Position numbers and translations under genes: made by a program | Virus record (IMG/VR): IMGVR_UViG_3300044644_001125 | Span: 1 to 64,000 of that record | Direction: 5' to 3' (one strand) | Length of the DNA: 64,000 nt | The notes under the pieces: model-generated | Told to the model about the DNA's origin: nothing | The model's database searches: none | The model's input: the letters and a program-made list of their open reading frames with translations, nothing else | In this document: positions 37,194 to 39,965 of the stretch, one piece after another | Position numbering within the stretch: the first letter of the stretch is position 1 | Layout: every line of letters begins with the position of its first letter

Positions 37194-37264
37194 ACATTAT
37201 CTTTTAGAAATGTTAAATAGAGGTAATAAACTAATTACTTATTAATTTCAAACGGTGAACTATC

Positions 37265-38188
37265 ATGGCTAAAATCAAAACATTTGCAACTAAGTTAAAA
37301 GAATGTATTAAACGTAACAGAGAACGGTGTGCGGATTTATACGACGATCCAACCAAAGTCGAATTTGTTGACTATATCACATGCCCAATTTACGGTATTA
37401 GAATGCGACAACTGAAAAGTACCTACATAACTGGTTATTTATTAATGACGGTTGAGGAATTCGACCAAAAATATCCCAATTTTCAACGCGAAGCTGATTC
37501 CAAAGTAGTGAATGTGAAAAAAGGTATTGCTAAAATTGATCCTGCTACTGGGTTAACTAAACATCAGTTATCAGTGGAAAAGTCAAGAATTTCACTTTCA
37601 ACTCCCGACGAAAACGGTGAAACTGGATATAGTAAACGAGGTCAAAAAACTAAAGCCACTCATATGAATAATGTGGATGATCAAGGAAGAAATGGATATT
37701 CGCAGCTAGCATCAAAGGCTATCACCAAGGGAAACCAAACTAAAGTTGATAAAGGTTTGATACTGCCACCAGAGGAACGTGATGATTTTTATAGATATAA
37801 GATTGTTGTTAGTACATTAACTGAAAGATTGCGTAAGAAATTAACGCAAGGGTATTGTACAGGATTGGCTGGAAAACCAGGAGCATACCACATTGATCAT
37901 GTGTATTCAACGTGCGATGGTTTTAAAAATGGAATTAGCCCACTTGTTATCGGTAATATCGCAAATCTTAAAATGATACCATGGGAAGAGAATATCGAAA
38001 AACATGCAAACTCTGCAAAGAGTATTGAGCAATTATTTGAAGAAACTGGCTACACCAAGGAGCAATCTGATATTGAATTTGCGATAACGATGGAAATGAT
38101 TGCCCTTGCTGTACAGAACGAGACACCAGTCAGTGGTGCATACATTGTAGAACATTTGAATGAAGCAGCATTACGTTACAAACAATAG
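37265..38188 (+). CDS. Free-standing HNH-like homing endonuclease
   Basis: C-terminal YHIDHVYS...N...N beta-beta-alpha-metal-like motif; lies between split intein 1 halves; TTAAATA at 37213-37219. Confidence 0.65.
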
Positions 38189-38495
38189 TTATGATATTTT
38201 AACGCCGTTCGGGTGGGAATCATTCGAAGGGATAATATTCAATGAATCGGTTTATAAACCGTCTAGGAAAATTATCTTTTCGACTGGTAATTCCATAACT
38301 GCAACGTTAGACCATCGATTTTATATCGATGGTCTCGAAGTACGAGTGGAAACTCTAAAGATTGGTGATTCACTTGATTCGGCGATTGGCCCTCAGCTAA
38401 TCGTCGATATCGATGCTGTGATATTAACGCATACATTCGAAATATTCAATTCTGAAAATCATATTATAGTTGCAAATGAGATTCATTCTCATCAA
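38160..38495 (+). mobile_element. Split intein 1, C-fragment (112 aa, ends His-Gln)
   Basis: ILTPFGW, block [21 protein letters not shown]|C. Confidence 0.85.
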
Positions 38496-38894
38496 TGTGA
38501 TGAATTCGCGCACATTGAGCCGCCTGAAAAAGCACGAGAATTTTGGACTGCATTATCACCAACATTGTCTACCGGTGGTAGATGTATTATCACGTCAACA
38601 CCGAATAGTGACGAGGATCAATTTGCTGCTATCTGGCACGAAGCTAATAAGAAATTTGATAGGAATGGCATTGAACAACACGTTGGATCTAATGGATTCT
38701 ACCCATTTTTTGCTAGTTGGAGCGAACATCCAGATAGGGATGATGATTGGGCTTTTCATCAACGCAGTCAGATTGGGGATGTCAAATTTTCGCGCGAATT
38801 TAATTGTTTAGAATCAATGACTTACGTAACACTACAAGACGAAAACGGTAAAGTTTTCGATATGACTATCGGCGACCTATACAATCAATGTTAA
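38160..38894 (+). CDS. terL: Terminase large subunit, fragment 2 (IntC1, extein, IntN2)
   Basis: 112 aa intein C-part ending SHQ, then CDEFAH (Walker B), [27 protein letters not shown], then CLESMTYV intein start. Confidence 0.93.
38805..38894 (+). mobile_element. Split intein 2, N-fragment (29 aa)
   Basis: [26 protein letters not shown] then stop. Confidence 0.85.
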
Positions 38895-38936
38895 ATACAC
38901 GAAACCATTACTTAAATTTTCATCAGGGATTATCAC

Positions 38937-39965
38937 ATGAGCAAGGCAACCTATTTATTATCTCCAATTGACGGAAACACCTACTGCAAAACCAATGGTA
39001 AGTTCACTATACATCTTAGGGAATATGGACTTACCTATCAAGATTATTATGAAACTTATATACTTGGGTATTGTCCAATATGTGCATGCGGGTCTAAAGT
39101 TACGATGAATGTATCGACCCATTTACATCCACGCAGTTGTGGAAAGCCTGTGTGTGTTGGTAAAATCACCAGCGATGTTAAACAGAATTGGACTCCGGAA
39201 CAGAGAGAGCAGGATTCAGCCAATAAGAAAGCCGCAAGTGCTGCAGAGACACCGGAGAAAAAACAACAGCGAAACGATAAACGTAAAGCAACTAACTTAA
39301 AAAATCACGGCGTTGAGTGGTCTACCCAGTCGGAAACAATGAAATCTAAGTCAAAACAGACTAAACTTGTACGACACGGTGATGAAAACTACAATAACAG
39401 CAAGATGATCAGTGCAACCAATCTAGCAAAACCTAGAGAGGAAAAAGACGAGATCAATGAAAAACGACGTCTAACTAATTTAGATATGCATGGTGTCGAA
39501 AACTGCTGTTTGATTCCGGGAAATTCGAGTAAATCGAATAAAGGAAACGCGAAGATTAAAGATTACACATTGCCATCTGGTAAGGTTATTGGAGTTCGTG
39601 GTTACGAACCAAATGCAATGGATACCTTATTAGAATCGTATCAAGAATCTGATATATTGATGCACGATGATTACTCAGAATATCAAATCCAAGTTTTCAG
39701 CTATACCTCGGACAAAGGTAGAATCGCGAAATACTACCCAGACATTTATATCCCTTCGGAAAACCGAATTATTGAGATCAAAAGTCAATGGTGGTGGGAT
39801 GGTAATGGTAAGACTGACGAAAAATATACAACCCGACTTGCGAATAATCTTAGAAAAAGGCAAGCCGTGATTGATGCTGGATATAATTACGAAGTGTGGT
39901 TATTTACTAGCAAGACAAACTATAGAGTACTAAAAGATGATGCAGACTTTCAAACCAAACACTAA
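38937..39965 (+). CDS. Free-standing PD-(D/E)XK-type endonuclease
   Basis: VRGYEP, YYPDIYIPSENRIIEIKS motif; N-terminal Cys motif and K..TNL..HGVE repeats; TTAAATA at 38891-38897. Confidence 0.72.
   Translation: MSKATYLLSPIDGNTYCKTNGKFTIHLREYGLTYQDYYETYILGYCPICACGSKVTMNVSTHLHPRSCGKPVCVGKITSDVKQNWTPEQREQDSANKKAASAAETPEKKQQRNDKRKATNLKNHGVEWSTQSETMKSKSKQTKLVRHGDENYNNSKMISATNLAKPREEKDEINEKRRLTNLDMHGVENCCLIPGNSSKSNKGNAKIKDYTLPSGKVIGVRGYEPNAMDTLLESYQESDILMHDDYSEYQIQVFSYTSDKGRIAKYYPDIYIPSENRIIEIKSQWWWDGNGKTDEKYTTRLANNLRKRQAVIDAGYNYEVWLFTSKTNYRVLKDDADFQTKH

Follow-up and report, generated by a model that had tools for sequence, protein, structure and literature searches.

The locus analysed here raises the question of how the terminase gene terL of a phage can be expressed from three separate pieces when each of its two breaks holds a free-standing endonuclease gene that runs into the following piece, and whether the endonuclease genes have made themselves indispensable in doing so. 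The window, i.e. the whole stretch of DNA that was analysed, comprises the first 64 kb (positions 1-64,000) of a single 327,256-bp contig with 38% G+C (IMG/VR record IMGVR_UViG_3300044644_001125), which originates from a lake-water metagenome assembly. The answer that is considered probable is a fractured terL whose breaks lie within two split inteins, each with an endonuclease gene between its N-terminal (IntN) and C-terminal (IntC) halves. TAAATA motifs would drive transcripts carrying an endonuclease gene together with the following IntC-extein gene, translation of the two would be coupled, the pieces would be joined by trans-splicing, and the endonuclease genes would be mobile.

An original prediction, made from the letters of the window, had described the open reading frames (ORFs) with their two 29-nt overlaps (37265-38188 with 38160-38894, and 38937-39965 with 39937-41040), a TTAAATA upstream of each endonuclease gene (37213-37219 and 38891-38897), a common start pattern of the two IntC genes and a different nuclease class in each gap. 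It had also invoked the fractured-gene model, in which a free-standing endonuclease invades an intein. All of this was borne out in the analyses presented below; two further claims, that the 29-nt overlap belongs to a common wiring and that it locks the endonuclease into the locus, fared less well and are taken up where the evidence is given.

The nearest named TerL relatives, as judged by protein-level similarity, all belong to jumbo phages (PA5oct/MIJ3, Atu_ph07, Phosso and the Rak2-like group), and a megablast search of the 8.5-kb terL region against GenBank phages gave no nucleotide match, the TerL relatives being recovered at the protein level only. The host of the fractured terL is an uncultured freshwater jumbo phage. 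The locus was compared with approximately 90 metagenomic relatives (labelled L followed by a number), the contexts of which were mapped and read directly.

The terL pieces and their inteins

The three terL pieces are collinear (Table 1) and match one TerL profile, phrog_36964, at positions 20-522, 522-634 and 626-871, respectively. In 59 IMG/VR loci the four extein segments were found to be contiguous, and these intein-less alleles fix the intein borders at GK/T, LIY/CDE and REFN/CEF (a slash marks the border). The insertion sites are located in the P-loop (RQMGK/T), in Walker B (LIY/CDE, site 2) and at the end of the ATPase domain (REFN/CEF, site 3). The P-loop holds a contiguous intein and the two other sites hold atypically split inteins, with an IntN1 of 38 aa and an IntC1 of 112 aa at site 2, and an IntN2 of 29 aa and an IntC2 of 114 aa at site 3.

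Both IntC proteins matched the consensus Cat intein (CatC, 6DSL_B), IntC2 at E 7.5e-11 over residues 4-112 and IntC1 at E 3.6e-6, which places them in the AceL/GOS/Cat-TerL family of atypical split inteins, and the two split inteins of terL are paralogous members of it with 26% identity. The splice residues are intact and kept in relatives: Cys1 in both IntN, a TxxH motif in both IntC (TLDH and TPEH), and the terminal Q/C and N/C. The window IntC1, of a form designated type A, has a terminal Gln (HSHQ/C, 38483-38495) in place of the usual Asn, which is kept in L083; the type-B IntC1 of other relatives ends in Asn without a penultimate His. The two IntC start with MKQHYVTN (IntC1) and MMQTFKPN (IntC2), both of which fit M-x-Q-x-(Y/F)-x-x-N; this start recurs, at times loosely, in IntC2 homologues and type-A IntC1, and is not seen in type-B IntC1. 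The same IntC2-TerL architecture and length was found in 27 metagenomic proteins, in a protein search that covered TerL of up to 642 aa, contiguous-intein alleles being sought by a scan of IMG/VR. Judging from the family membership of the inteins, the three polypeptides would be converted into a TerL of approximately 530 aa by two trans-splicing reactions and one cis-splicing reaction.

The P-loop intein has a homologue with 40% identity at the same site in L083. It displays a block-B-like HHLW, a block-F Cys (VRCLQV) and a THN/T end, and its LAGLIDADG_3 match is weak (E 0.07). Its Ala start together with HHLW, VRCLQV and THN/T presumably corresponds to the WCT pattern of class 3 inteins.

Endonuclease genes in the gaps

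The ORF in the second gap matches Pfam DUF7487 at E 2e-30 and has more than 200 full-length metagenomic homologues. The catalytic residues P268-D269, E280 and K282 (PD...ExK) are invariant in 45 sequences, and in a structural model of high confidence (predicted local distance difference test score, pLDDT, 88.9) residues ~200-340 align to Vsr (Z 8.2), TnsA (7.8), I-Bth0305I (3R3P; 6.2) and Hjc (6.1). Vsr-type catalytic residues (Asp/His and an FWH-like motif) were not found in the protein, nor was any sequence match to the Vsr-like/EDxHD family. The window DUF7487 protein is a canonical PD-(D/E)XK enzyme and not of the Vsr-like EDxHD type.

The ORF in the first gap has more than 120 homologues, in 43 of which D211, N234 and N243 are invariant and H212 is near-invariant (DH...N...N). 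Its model (pLDDT 90.1) contains strands at 208-212 and 235-239 and a helix at 240-246, and the best structural matches are HNH domains, though weak ones (phage HNH 5H0O, Z 4.3; Cas9 HNH, E 0.3). The homologues of both endonucleases, at ~45-55% identity, keep the invariant catalytic residues. PDB sequence and profile searches with both endonucleases returned nothing useful, and Foldseek against the PDB gave weak matches only. No homology between the two window endonucleases was detectable, BLASTP being non-significant and hhalign giving E 0.54; fold matches of the HNH model to DUF7487 proteins in BFVD (E 2e-7) are the sole hint of a shared DNA-binding module.

Some homologues of the HNH-type protein (P0158, P0184, P0195, P0207, P0216, P0228 and others) carry 100-200 extra N-terminal residues without a Pfam match. 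Longer homologues (396-512 aa) were considered as endonuclease-IntC fusions and rejected as such, their extra residues being N-terminal.

Expression signals and overlaps

The two endonuclease genes lie in a different frame and have their own start and promoter-like motif. TTAAATA is rare in the genome, with 36 and 29 copies on the two strands versus ~90 expected per strand, and it is enriched upstream of starts, 16 of the 65 copies lying within 80 nt. A k-mer survey showed that TTAAATA is one form of an underlying motif, [A/C/T]TAAATA[C]. TAAATA occurs 43 times in the window, half as often as in shuffled sequences (92 ± 10), and almost half of its genomic copies (97/212) are found in the 100 nt that precede called starts, a distance of 30-39 nt being the most frequent. 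The genes behind it include those for the tail sheath, a head-tail adaptor and virion proteins as well as terL fragment 1. Of 16 distinct loci with the DUF7487 gene, 14 also have the motif 25-45 nt ahead of it, despite proteins that are only ~50% identical; the motif precedes terL in L081, L083, L086, L087, L091 and L093 too, and the promoter-like region at 37196-37219 is conserved in L093.

Between positions 32000 and 41600, plus-strand copies of TAAATA are present only at 32607, 37214, 38892, 41436 and 41572. No other plus-strand TAAATA, other enriched upstream motif, strong sigma-70-like site or terminator was found between the endonuclease and IntC genes, and the motifs before the endonuclease genes are the only promoter-like ones able to serve terL fragments 2 and 3. 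The pairing of the two IntC genes with the anti-Shine-Dalgarno sequence amounts to +0.2 and -2.4 kcal/mol, as weak as for random sequence, compared to a gene median of -4.3. In line with the original prediction, then, neither an independent promoter motif nor a ribosome-binding site of the IntC genes was found in the window. The lack of a Shine-Dalgarno (SD) site in both IntC genes makes a dependence on upstream transcription and translation plausible, and since they also lack a promoter motif and have start codons embedded in the last part of the preceding ORF, it is probably ribosomes arriving from this ORF on which their translation depends.

An overlap was present at all 22 of the distinct junctions that hold a full-length endonuclease gene. 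At site 3 its length was 4, 10, 13 (two junctions), 17 (seven), 20, 23 (two) or 29 nt (two), and at site 2 it was 23 (two), 26 or 29 nt with HNH-type genes and 34 nt with Vsr-like genes (two). The two overlaps of the window are identical at 19 of 29 positions, compared to 18 of 60 in the 60 nt upstream. The original prediction had treated 29 nt as part of a common wiring; as the length ranges from 4 to 34 nt in two relative frames, it is instead specific to one lineage, represented by the window and L089.

In L081, L083, L086, L087 and L091, TAAATA is positioned ~5 nt before the terL ATG, immediately behind a hairpin and T-run resembling a terminator; should it act as a promoter there, the mRNAs would be nearly leaderless. 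A 12-mer, ATTATCTTTTAG, occurs in 139 genomic copies in both orientations, mostly intergenic and often as inverted pairs ~20 nt apart, and immediately precedes the TAAATA motifs ahead of terL fragment 1 and the HNH gene; it could be a hairpin element or a site for a regulator. Other words enriched upstream of genes, namely AAGCACTACGGAGTAAA-like (~20-29 genes), CCCACCTTAACAA-like (~28-33), CGAGATCTA (~13-20) and ACTTGACA (~23-31), probably mark other promoter or regulatory classes.

Gain, exchange and loss among relatives

The relatives display intein-less alleles, a contiguous mini-intein, a split intein with endonuclease, a split intein with a remnant of it and a split intein without endonuclease. 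The complete three-piece layout recurs in the distant lineage L083, where the overlaps measure 23 and 17 nt, while a fracture at site 3 only, with DUF7487, was observed in L087, L091, L105 and others. At site 3, L128-L130 carry a contiguous mini-intein without an endonuclease domain.

Site 2 has seen an exchange. The 256-kb contig L093 has extein segments that are 90-100% identical to those of the window and an IntN1 that is 95% identical, and it lacks a site-3 intein. Its site-2 endonuclease shares the first 167 residues with that of the window (84% identical) and continues with a Vsr-like C-terminal domain, and its IntC1 is only ~41% identical to the window IntC1. Nucleotide homology of the two is lost at window position 37699 and picks up again exactly at 38496, the border of IntC1 and extein. 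Vsr-like forms (AIEYQSNAWHSNP) are present at site 2 in L093, L094 and L103, the motif being confined to site-2 genes of relatives, and the first ~145-167 residues of the HNH-type protein are what they have in common with it. The comparison directly shows an exchange of nuclease domain and IntC as one block. In L089, by contrast to the window, there is no site-2 endonuclease gene, and the homologue of 37196-37229 abuts a type-B IntC1 gene with its own AAGGA.

Deletions have left short pieces behind. Stumps of the endonuclease 3' end were found at site 3 in L086, L090, L120 and L137 and at site 2 in L097 and L120, and all six remnants keep the 3' end adjoining the IntC start. At least five distinct site-3 alleles (L081, L097, L103, L122 and L127) are split without any endonuclease gene, and the piece retained after deletion measures 8-280 nt. 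In such alleles the end of the IntN gene usually coincides with the IntC ATG or adjoins it: L081 has an ATGA overlap, L103 a TAA followed directly by ATG and L090 a 3-nt gap, and in L122 IntN2 continues in frame into the final endonuclease codons, with a 17-nt overlap kept. The alleles compared show endonuclease genes that are mobile and dispensable, being gained, swapped as a unit with IntC and deleted, and a split state that persists after the deletion together with a short sequence just before the IntC start.

Alternative explanations

A stronger version of the favoured reading is put forward tentatively, its chances being judged as lower than even. TerL would be made from three polypeptides through two orthogonal split inteins with IntN of 29 and 38 aa, and IntC translation would be slaved to termination of whichever ORF lies upstream; the unit that is selected and exchanged would therefore be the endonuclease 3' end plus IntC, and not the endonuclease gene.

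Several observations weigh against the favoured reading itself. TAAATA is a putative promoter by virtue of its position and conservation, and the window sequence was found in no RNA run. An overlap of 29 nt is long for termination-reinitiation. In relatives with type-B IntC1, the 3' end of the endonuclease gene contains a good SD (AAGGA or GAGGA), and L127 and L097, which are without endonuclease, have spacers of 14-80 nt, so that coupling is not universal. The ORF at 37265-38188 gave no Pfam match and no PDB sequence or profile match, and it is assigned to the HNH type, on its motif and weak structural matches, with moderate confidence. Finally, with an IntN1 that is nearly the same in the window and L093 and an IntC1 that is not, correct pairing of IntN1 and IntC1 has to be assumed.

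Some of these points are shared by the rival that survives best, which is nonetheless thought unlikely. In this view the overlap is incidental, with the endonuclease ORF continuing as far as the first in-frame stop inside IntC, which initiates independently on an A/U-rich, unstructured leader without coupling. The variable length and frame of the overlaps (1-mod-3 and 2-mod-3 classes) would be expected from such an origin, as would the SD sites and spacers just mentioned, and about one tenth of the genes of the phage pair with the anti-SD sequence as weakly as IntC1. An incidental overlap is, however, difficult to reconcile with the lack of a spacer at any of the 22 junctions, with the stop-start overlap or abutment to the IntN gene that most endonuclease-less alleles have recreated, and with the consistent sparing by deletions of the bases just before the ATG.

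The favoured reading also holds that the endonucleases are mobile, and a different view would be that they are inactive or domesticated, no longer home, and that the locus is a frozen accident. Frameshifted or fragmentary copies in L099, L124 and L126 point in this direction. The full-length homologues of both proteins, diverged to about half identity with their catalytic residues invariant, speak against it, as do the conserved promoter-like motif upstream and the presence/absence polymorphism of the endonuclease genes, which was seen both among near-identical phages and within one lake sample (in one run, a window-identical contig occurs alongside an allele that lacks both the HNH gene and the site-3 intein). 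Such a relic is held to be improbable.

Less credible still is the lock-in of the original prediction, in which the IntC start inside the endonuclease ORF makes TerL depend on the endonuclease gene, so that the parasite cannot be lost. The overlap at every junction with a full-length gene, the lack of SD and promoter motif before the window IntC genes and the retention of the 3' end in every remnant are all compatible with it, and the part of the claim that concerns a dependence of the terminase on upstream expression remains plausible. What fails is the retention of the parasite: at site 3 the gene is absent or reduced to its 3' stump in nine of the relatives named above, at site 2 it is missing from L089 and reduced in L097 and L120, L093 has swapped its nuclease domain together with IntC1, and what is kept is the short piece rather than the whole gene. 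This repeated natural loss and replacement contradicts lock-in.

With regard to the origin of the split, a route discussed in bioRxiv 10.1101/2025.01.02.630785 would have the split inteins arise when an internal stop codon led to the decay of an endonuclease domain in frame with the intein, and not through invasion by a free-standing gene. This can be given very little weight here, given that the break comes after the first splicing block and not at the canonical endonuclease-domain site (Dassa et al. 2009, PMC2677866), that nucleases of three unrelated types are found in the same break, with one N-terminal module common to the HNH and Vsr-like forms at site 2, that the endonuclease genes have another frame and their own start and promoter-like motif, and that the contiguous mini-intein at site 3 has no endonuclease domain. 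That the three pieces are a chimera or a non-functional terL, a concern in that the genome is assembled from a metagenome, is next to inconceivable, as contigs identical to the window, with zero differences across both junctions, were found in three further lake/freshwater runs, the same layout exists in L083 (whose fragment-3 protein, P0009, is present in 129 blocks of the contig collection), and all splice-junction residues are intact.

Further features of the locus

Apart from the endonuclease gene, the first gap, which is 3.9 kb long, comprises non-coding DNA rich in repeats, three genes on the minus strand and a small RNA. The RNA, a full-length match to the Polynucleobacter-1 RNA family, is preceded on the same strand by a perfect sigma-70-like promoter (TTGACA-17-TATAAT, 35415-35387) and a second one with 11 of 12 matching positions (35486-35458), and its region is 88.7% conserved in L093. 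Minus-strand Lcl_C genes flank terL in varying number: the window has two of them, and in L093 another four lie upstream of terL. As a repeated domain such as Lcl_C would lead one to expect, many metagenome contigs stop at 36644-36705.

Intein-like, HNH-like, Vsr-like and DUF7487-N-terminal-like segments were detected by tblastn elsewhere in the 327-kb genome (Table 1), where other genes of this phage have probably been invaded too.

Table 1. Positions of the features discussed, in window coordinates unless the genome or another contig is named (aa, amino acids)
Feature	Position	Strand	Remarks
TAAATA promoter-like motif (GGTAAATAC)	32607-32612	+	40 nt upstream of terL fragment 1; preceded by repeat ATTATCTTTTAG at 32593-32604
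terL fragment 1	32647-34266	+	539 aa; extein 1, contiguous intein, extein 2, IntN1; phrog_36964 E 8e-97; borders from intein-less alleles
Contiguous P-loop intein	32908-33888	+	327 aa; RQMGK/...THN/TT; starts with Ala; weak LAGLIDADG-like middle
IntN1	34150-34263	+	38 aa; CLDGDTTV...; in Walker B (LIY/CDE)
Extra cargo of gap 1	34267-37195		Content varies between close relatives
ATTATCTTTTAG copies	32593, 34358-34683, 35232-35313, 36246, 37196, 41037-41140
Polynucleobacter-1 RNA (Rfam RF01718)	35014-35164	-	Full-length match, 75.9 bits (gathering score 37), E 4e-15
Minus-strand genes of gap 1	35490-36203; 36254-36562; 36532-37197	-	Last two both Lcl_C (PF07603)
Lcl_C gene stretches	Window 36254-37197; L093 4083-5273, 9252-9932
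Promoter-like region of HNH gene and, putatively, of terL fragment 2	37196-37219	+	ATTATCTTTTAG repeat, then TTAAATA (37213-37219), 46 nt before HNH-gene ATG 37265
HNH-type free-standing endonuclease gene	37265-38188	+	307 aa; HNH motif at residues ~209-247
HNH gene 3' end / IntC1 start overlap	38160-38188	+	29 nt
terL fragment 2	38160-38894	+	244 aa; IntC1 38160-38495 (ends HSHQ/C), extein 3 38496-38804, IntN2 38805-38891 (29 aa)
TTAAATA promoter-like motif	38891-38897	+	Contains fragment-2 TAA stop; 40 nt before DUF7487 ATG 38937
PD-(D/E)XK free-standing endonuclease gene (Pfam DUF7487)	38937-39965	+	342 aa; Cys-rich N-terminus, helical middle, nuclease domain ~200-340
DUF7487 gene 3' end / IntC2 start overlap	39937-39965	+	29 nt
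terL fragment 3	39937-41040	+	367 aa; IntC2 39937-40278 (ends LSSN/C), extein 4 with RNaseH-like nuclease domain
Intein- and endonuclease-like segments elsewhere (tblastn)	Genome 61326-61517, 68629-68949, 132309-132458, 193758-194057, 229119-229454, 242118-242498, 320392-320553; window 5211-5558

Comparison with known systems

The layout of the locus fits that of the fractured genes described by Dassa, London, Stoddard, Schueler-Furman and Pietrokovski (2009, NAR; PMC2677866) in every respect tested, and its kind has been known since then. As in those genes, the host gene is present as separate ORFs, the split-intein halves lie at the break with a free-standing endonuclease gene between them, and the 3' end of the latter overlaps the IntC gene, by 6-69 bp in 15 loci of that study, in which imported control elements were proposed. 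In fractured genes such an overlap is frequent without being obligatory. The closest counterpart is the freshwater phage terminase of the same work (the Lake Gatun locus, later GOS-TerL), with its unusual early break and long IntC. The present locus differs in having two breaks and a contiguous intein in one gene, in its HNH and canonical PD-(D/E)XK (DUF7487) endonucleases as opposed to GIY-YIG or Vsr-like ones, in the TAAATA motif in place of upstream hairpins, and in the availability of the full genome context and a population series.

The AceL-TerL, GOS-TerL and consensus Cat inteins (PDB 6DSL; PMC11766414) have an IntN of 25-37 aa, an IntC of 104-115 or, more broadly, about 104-122 aa, a Cys+1 and, reportedly, interchangeable IntN. 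The window inteins resemble them in their TerL host, short IntN, long IntC and Cys+1, and the interchangeability fits the pairing of one IntN1 with two types of IntC1 observed here. They depart from this family in the Gln that ends IntC1 instead of Asn, in three extra N-terminal residues (M-x-Q) of both IntC, and in that two members occur at different sites of the same protein, with splicing being predicted from sequence.

A split PolB intein with an HNH gene between its halves has been reported for the Pseudomonas jumbo phage MIJ3 (PMC6892783), which is related to the present phage through its TerL. In MIJ3, by contrast, the host gene is PolB, the split is single and at the canonical site, and the long IntN contains blocks A, N2, B and N4. 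Splits without inteins are represented by nrdA of Aeromonas phage Aeh1, which is split by an HNH gene, and gp43 of phage 25, cited in PMC2677866 and PMC3045599. These cases are similar in that an essential phage gene is divided by a free-standing endonuclease gene, which overlaps the fragment behind it and whose region controls expression; they differ in that their products assemble non-covalently with no intein, whereas the pieces here are predicted to be ligated. The Vsr-like (EDxHD) enzymes exemplified by I-Bth0305I (PMC3239194) have the same broad restriction-endonuclease-like fold as the window DUF7487 protein (3R3P Z 6.2; Vsr 8.2). The latter, unlike them, carries the classical PD...ExK and gave no sequence match to this family.

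The late promoters of phage T4 have the sequence TATAAATA and are read by the gp55/gp33/gp45 system. By analogy, the motif of the window may be compared to them as a short, A/T-rich single box with TAAATA upstream of virion and packaging genes. Its consensus, [A/C/T]TAAATA[C], is nevertheless different, and the exact T4 octamer is rare (3+4 copies).

The presence in one gene of a contiguous intein alongside two atypical split inteins is possibly new, and the same applies to a PD-(D/E)XK endonuclease of the canonical type within a gap of this kind; a literature search in an incomplete library gave no paper naming DUF7487 and none in which one gene has two natural split inteins. To go by its sequence and placement, Pfam DUF7487 would be assigned to the homing endonucleases that accompany split inteins. 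The locus also provides two natural atypical split inteins that have to be orthogonal to each other in vivo, and such a pair would be of use in ligating proteins from three pieces by means of short tags. The locus mainly confirms an existing model, the wiring by an endonuclease inside a split intein, an IntC overlap and imported signals having been textbook matter since 2009, and together with its ~90 relatives it forms a nearly complete natural series of the homing cycle, from empty site and mini-intein through split intein with endonuclease and decaying endonuclease to the bare split.

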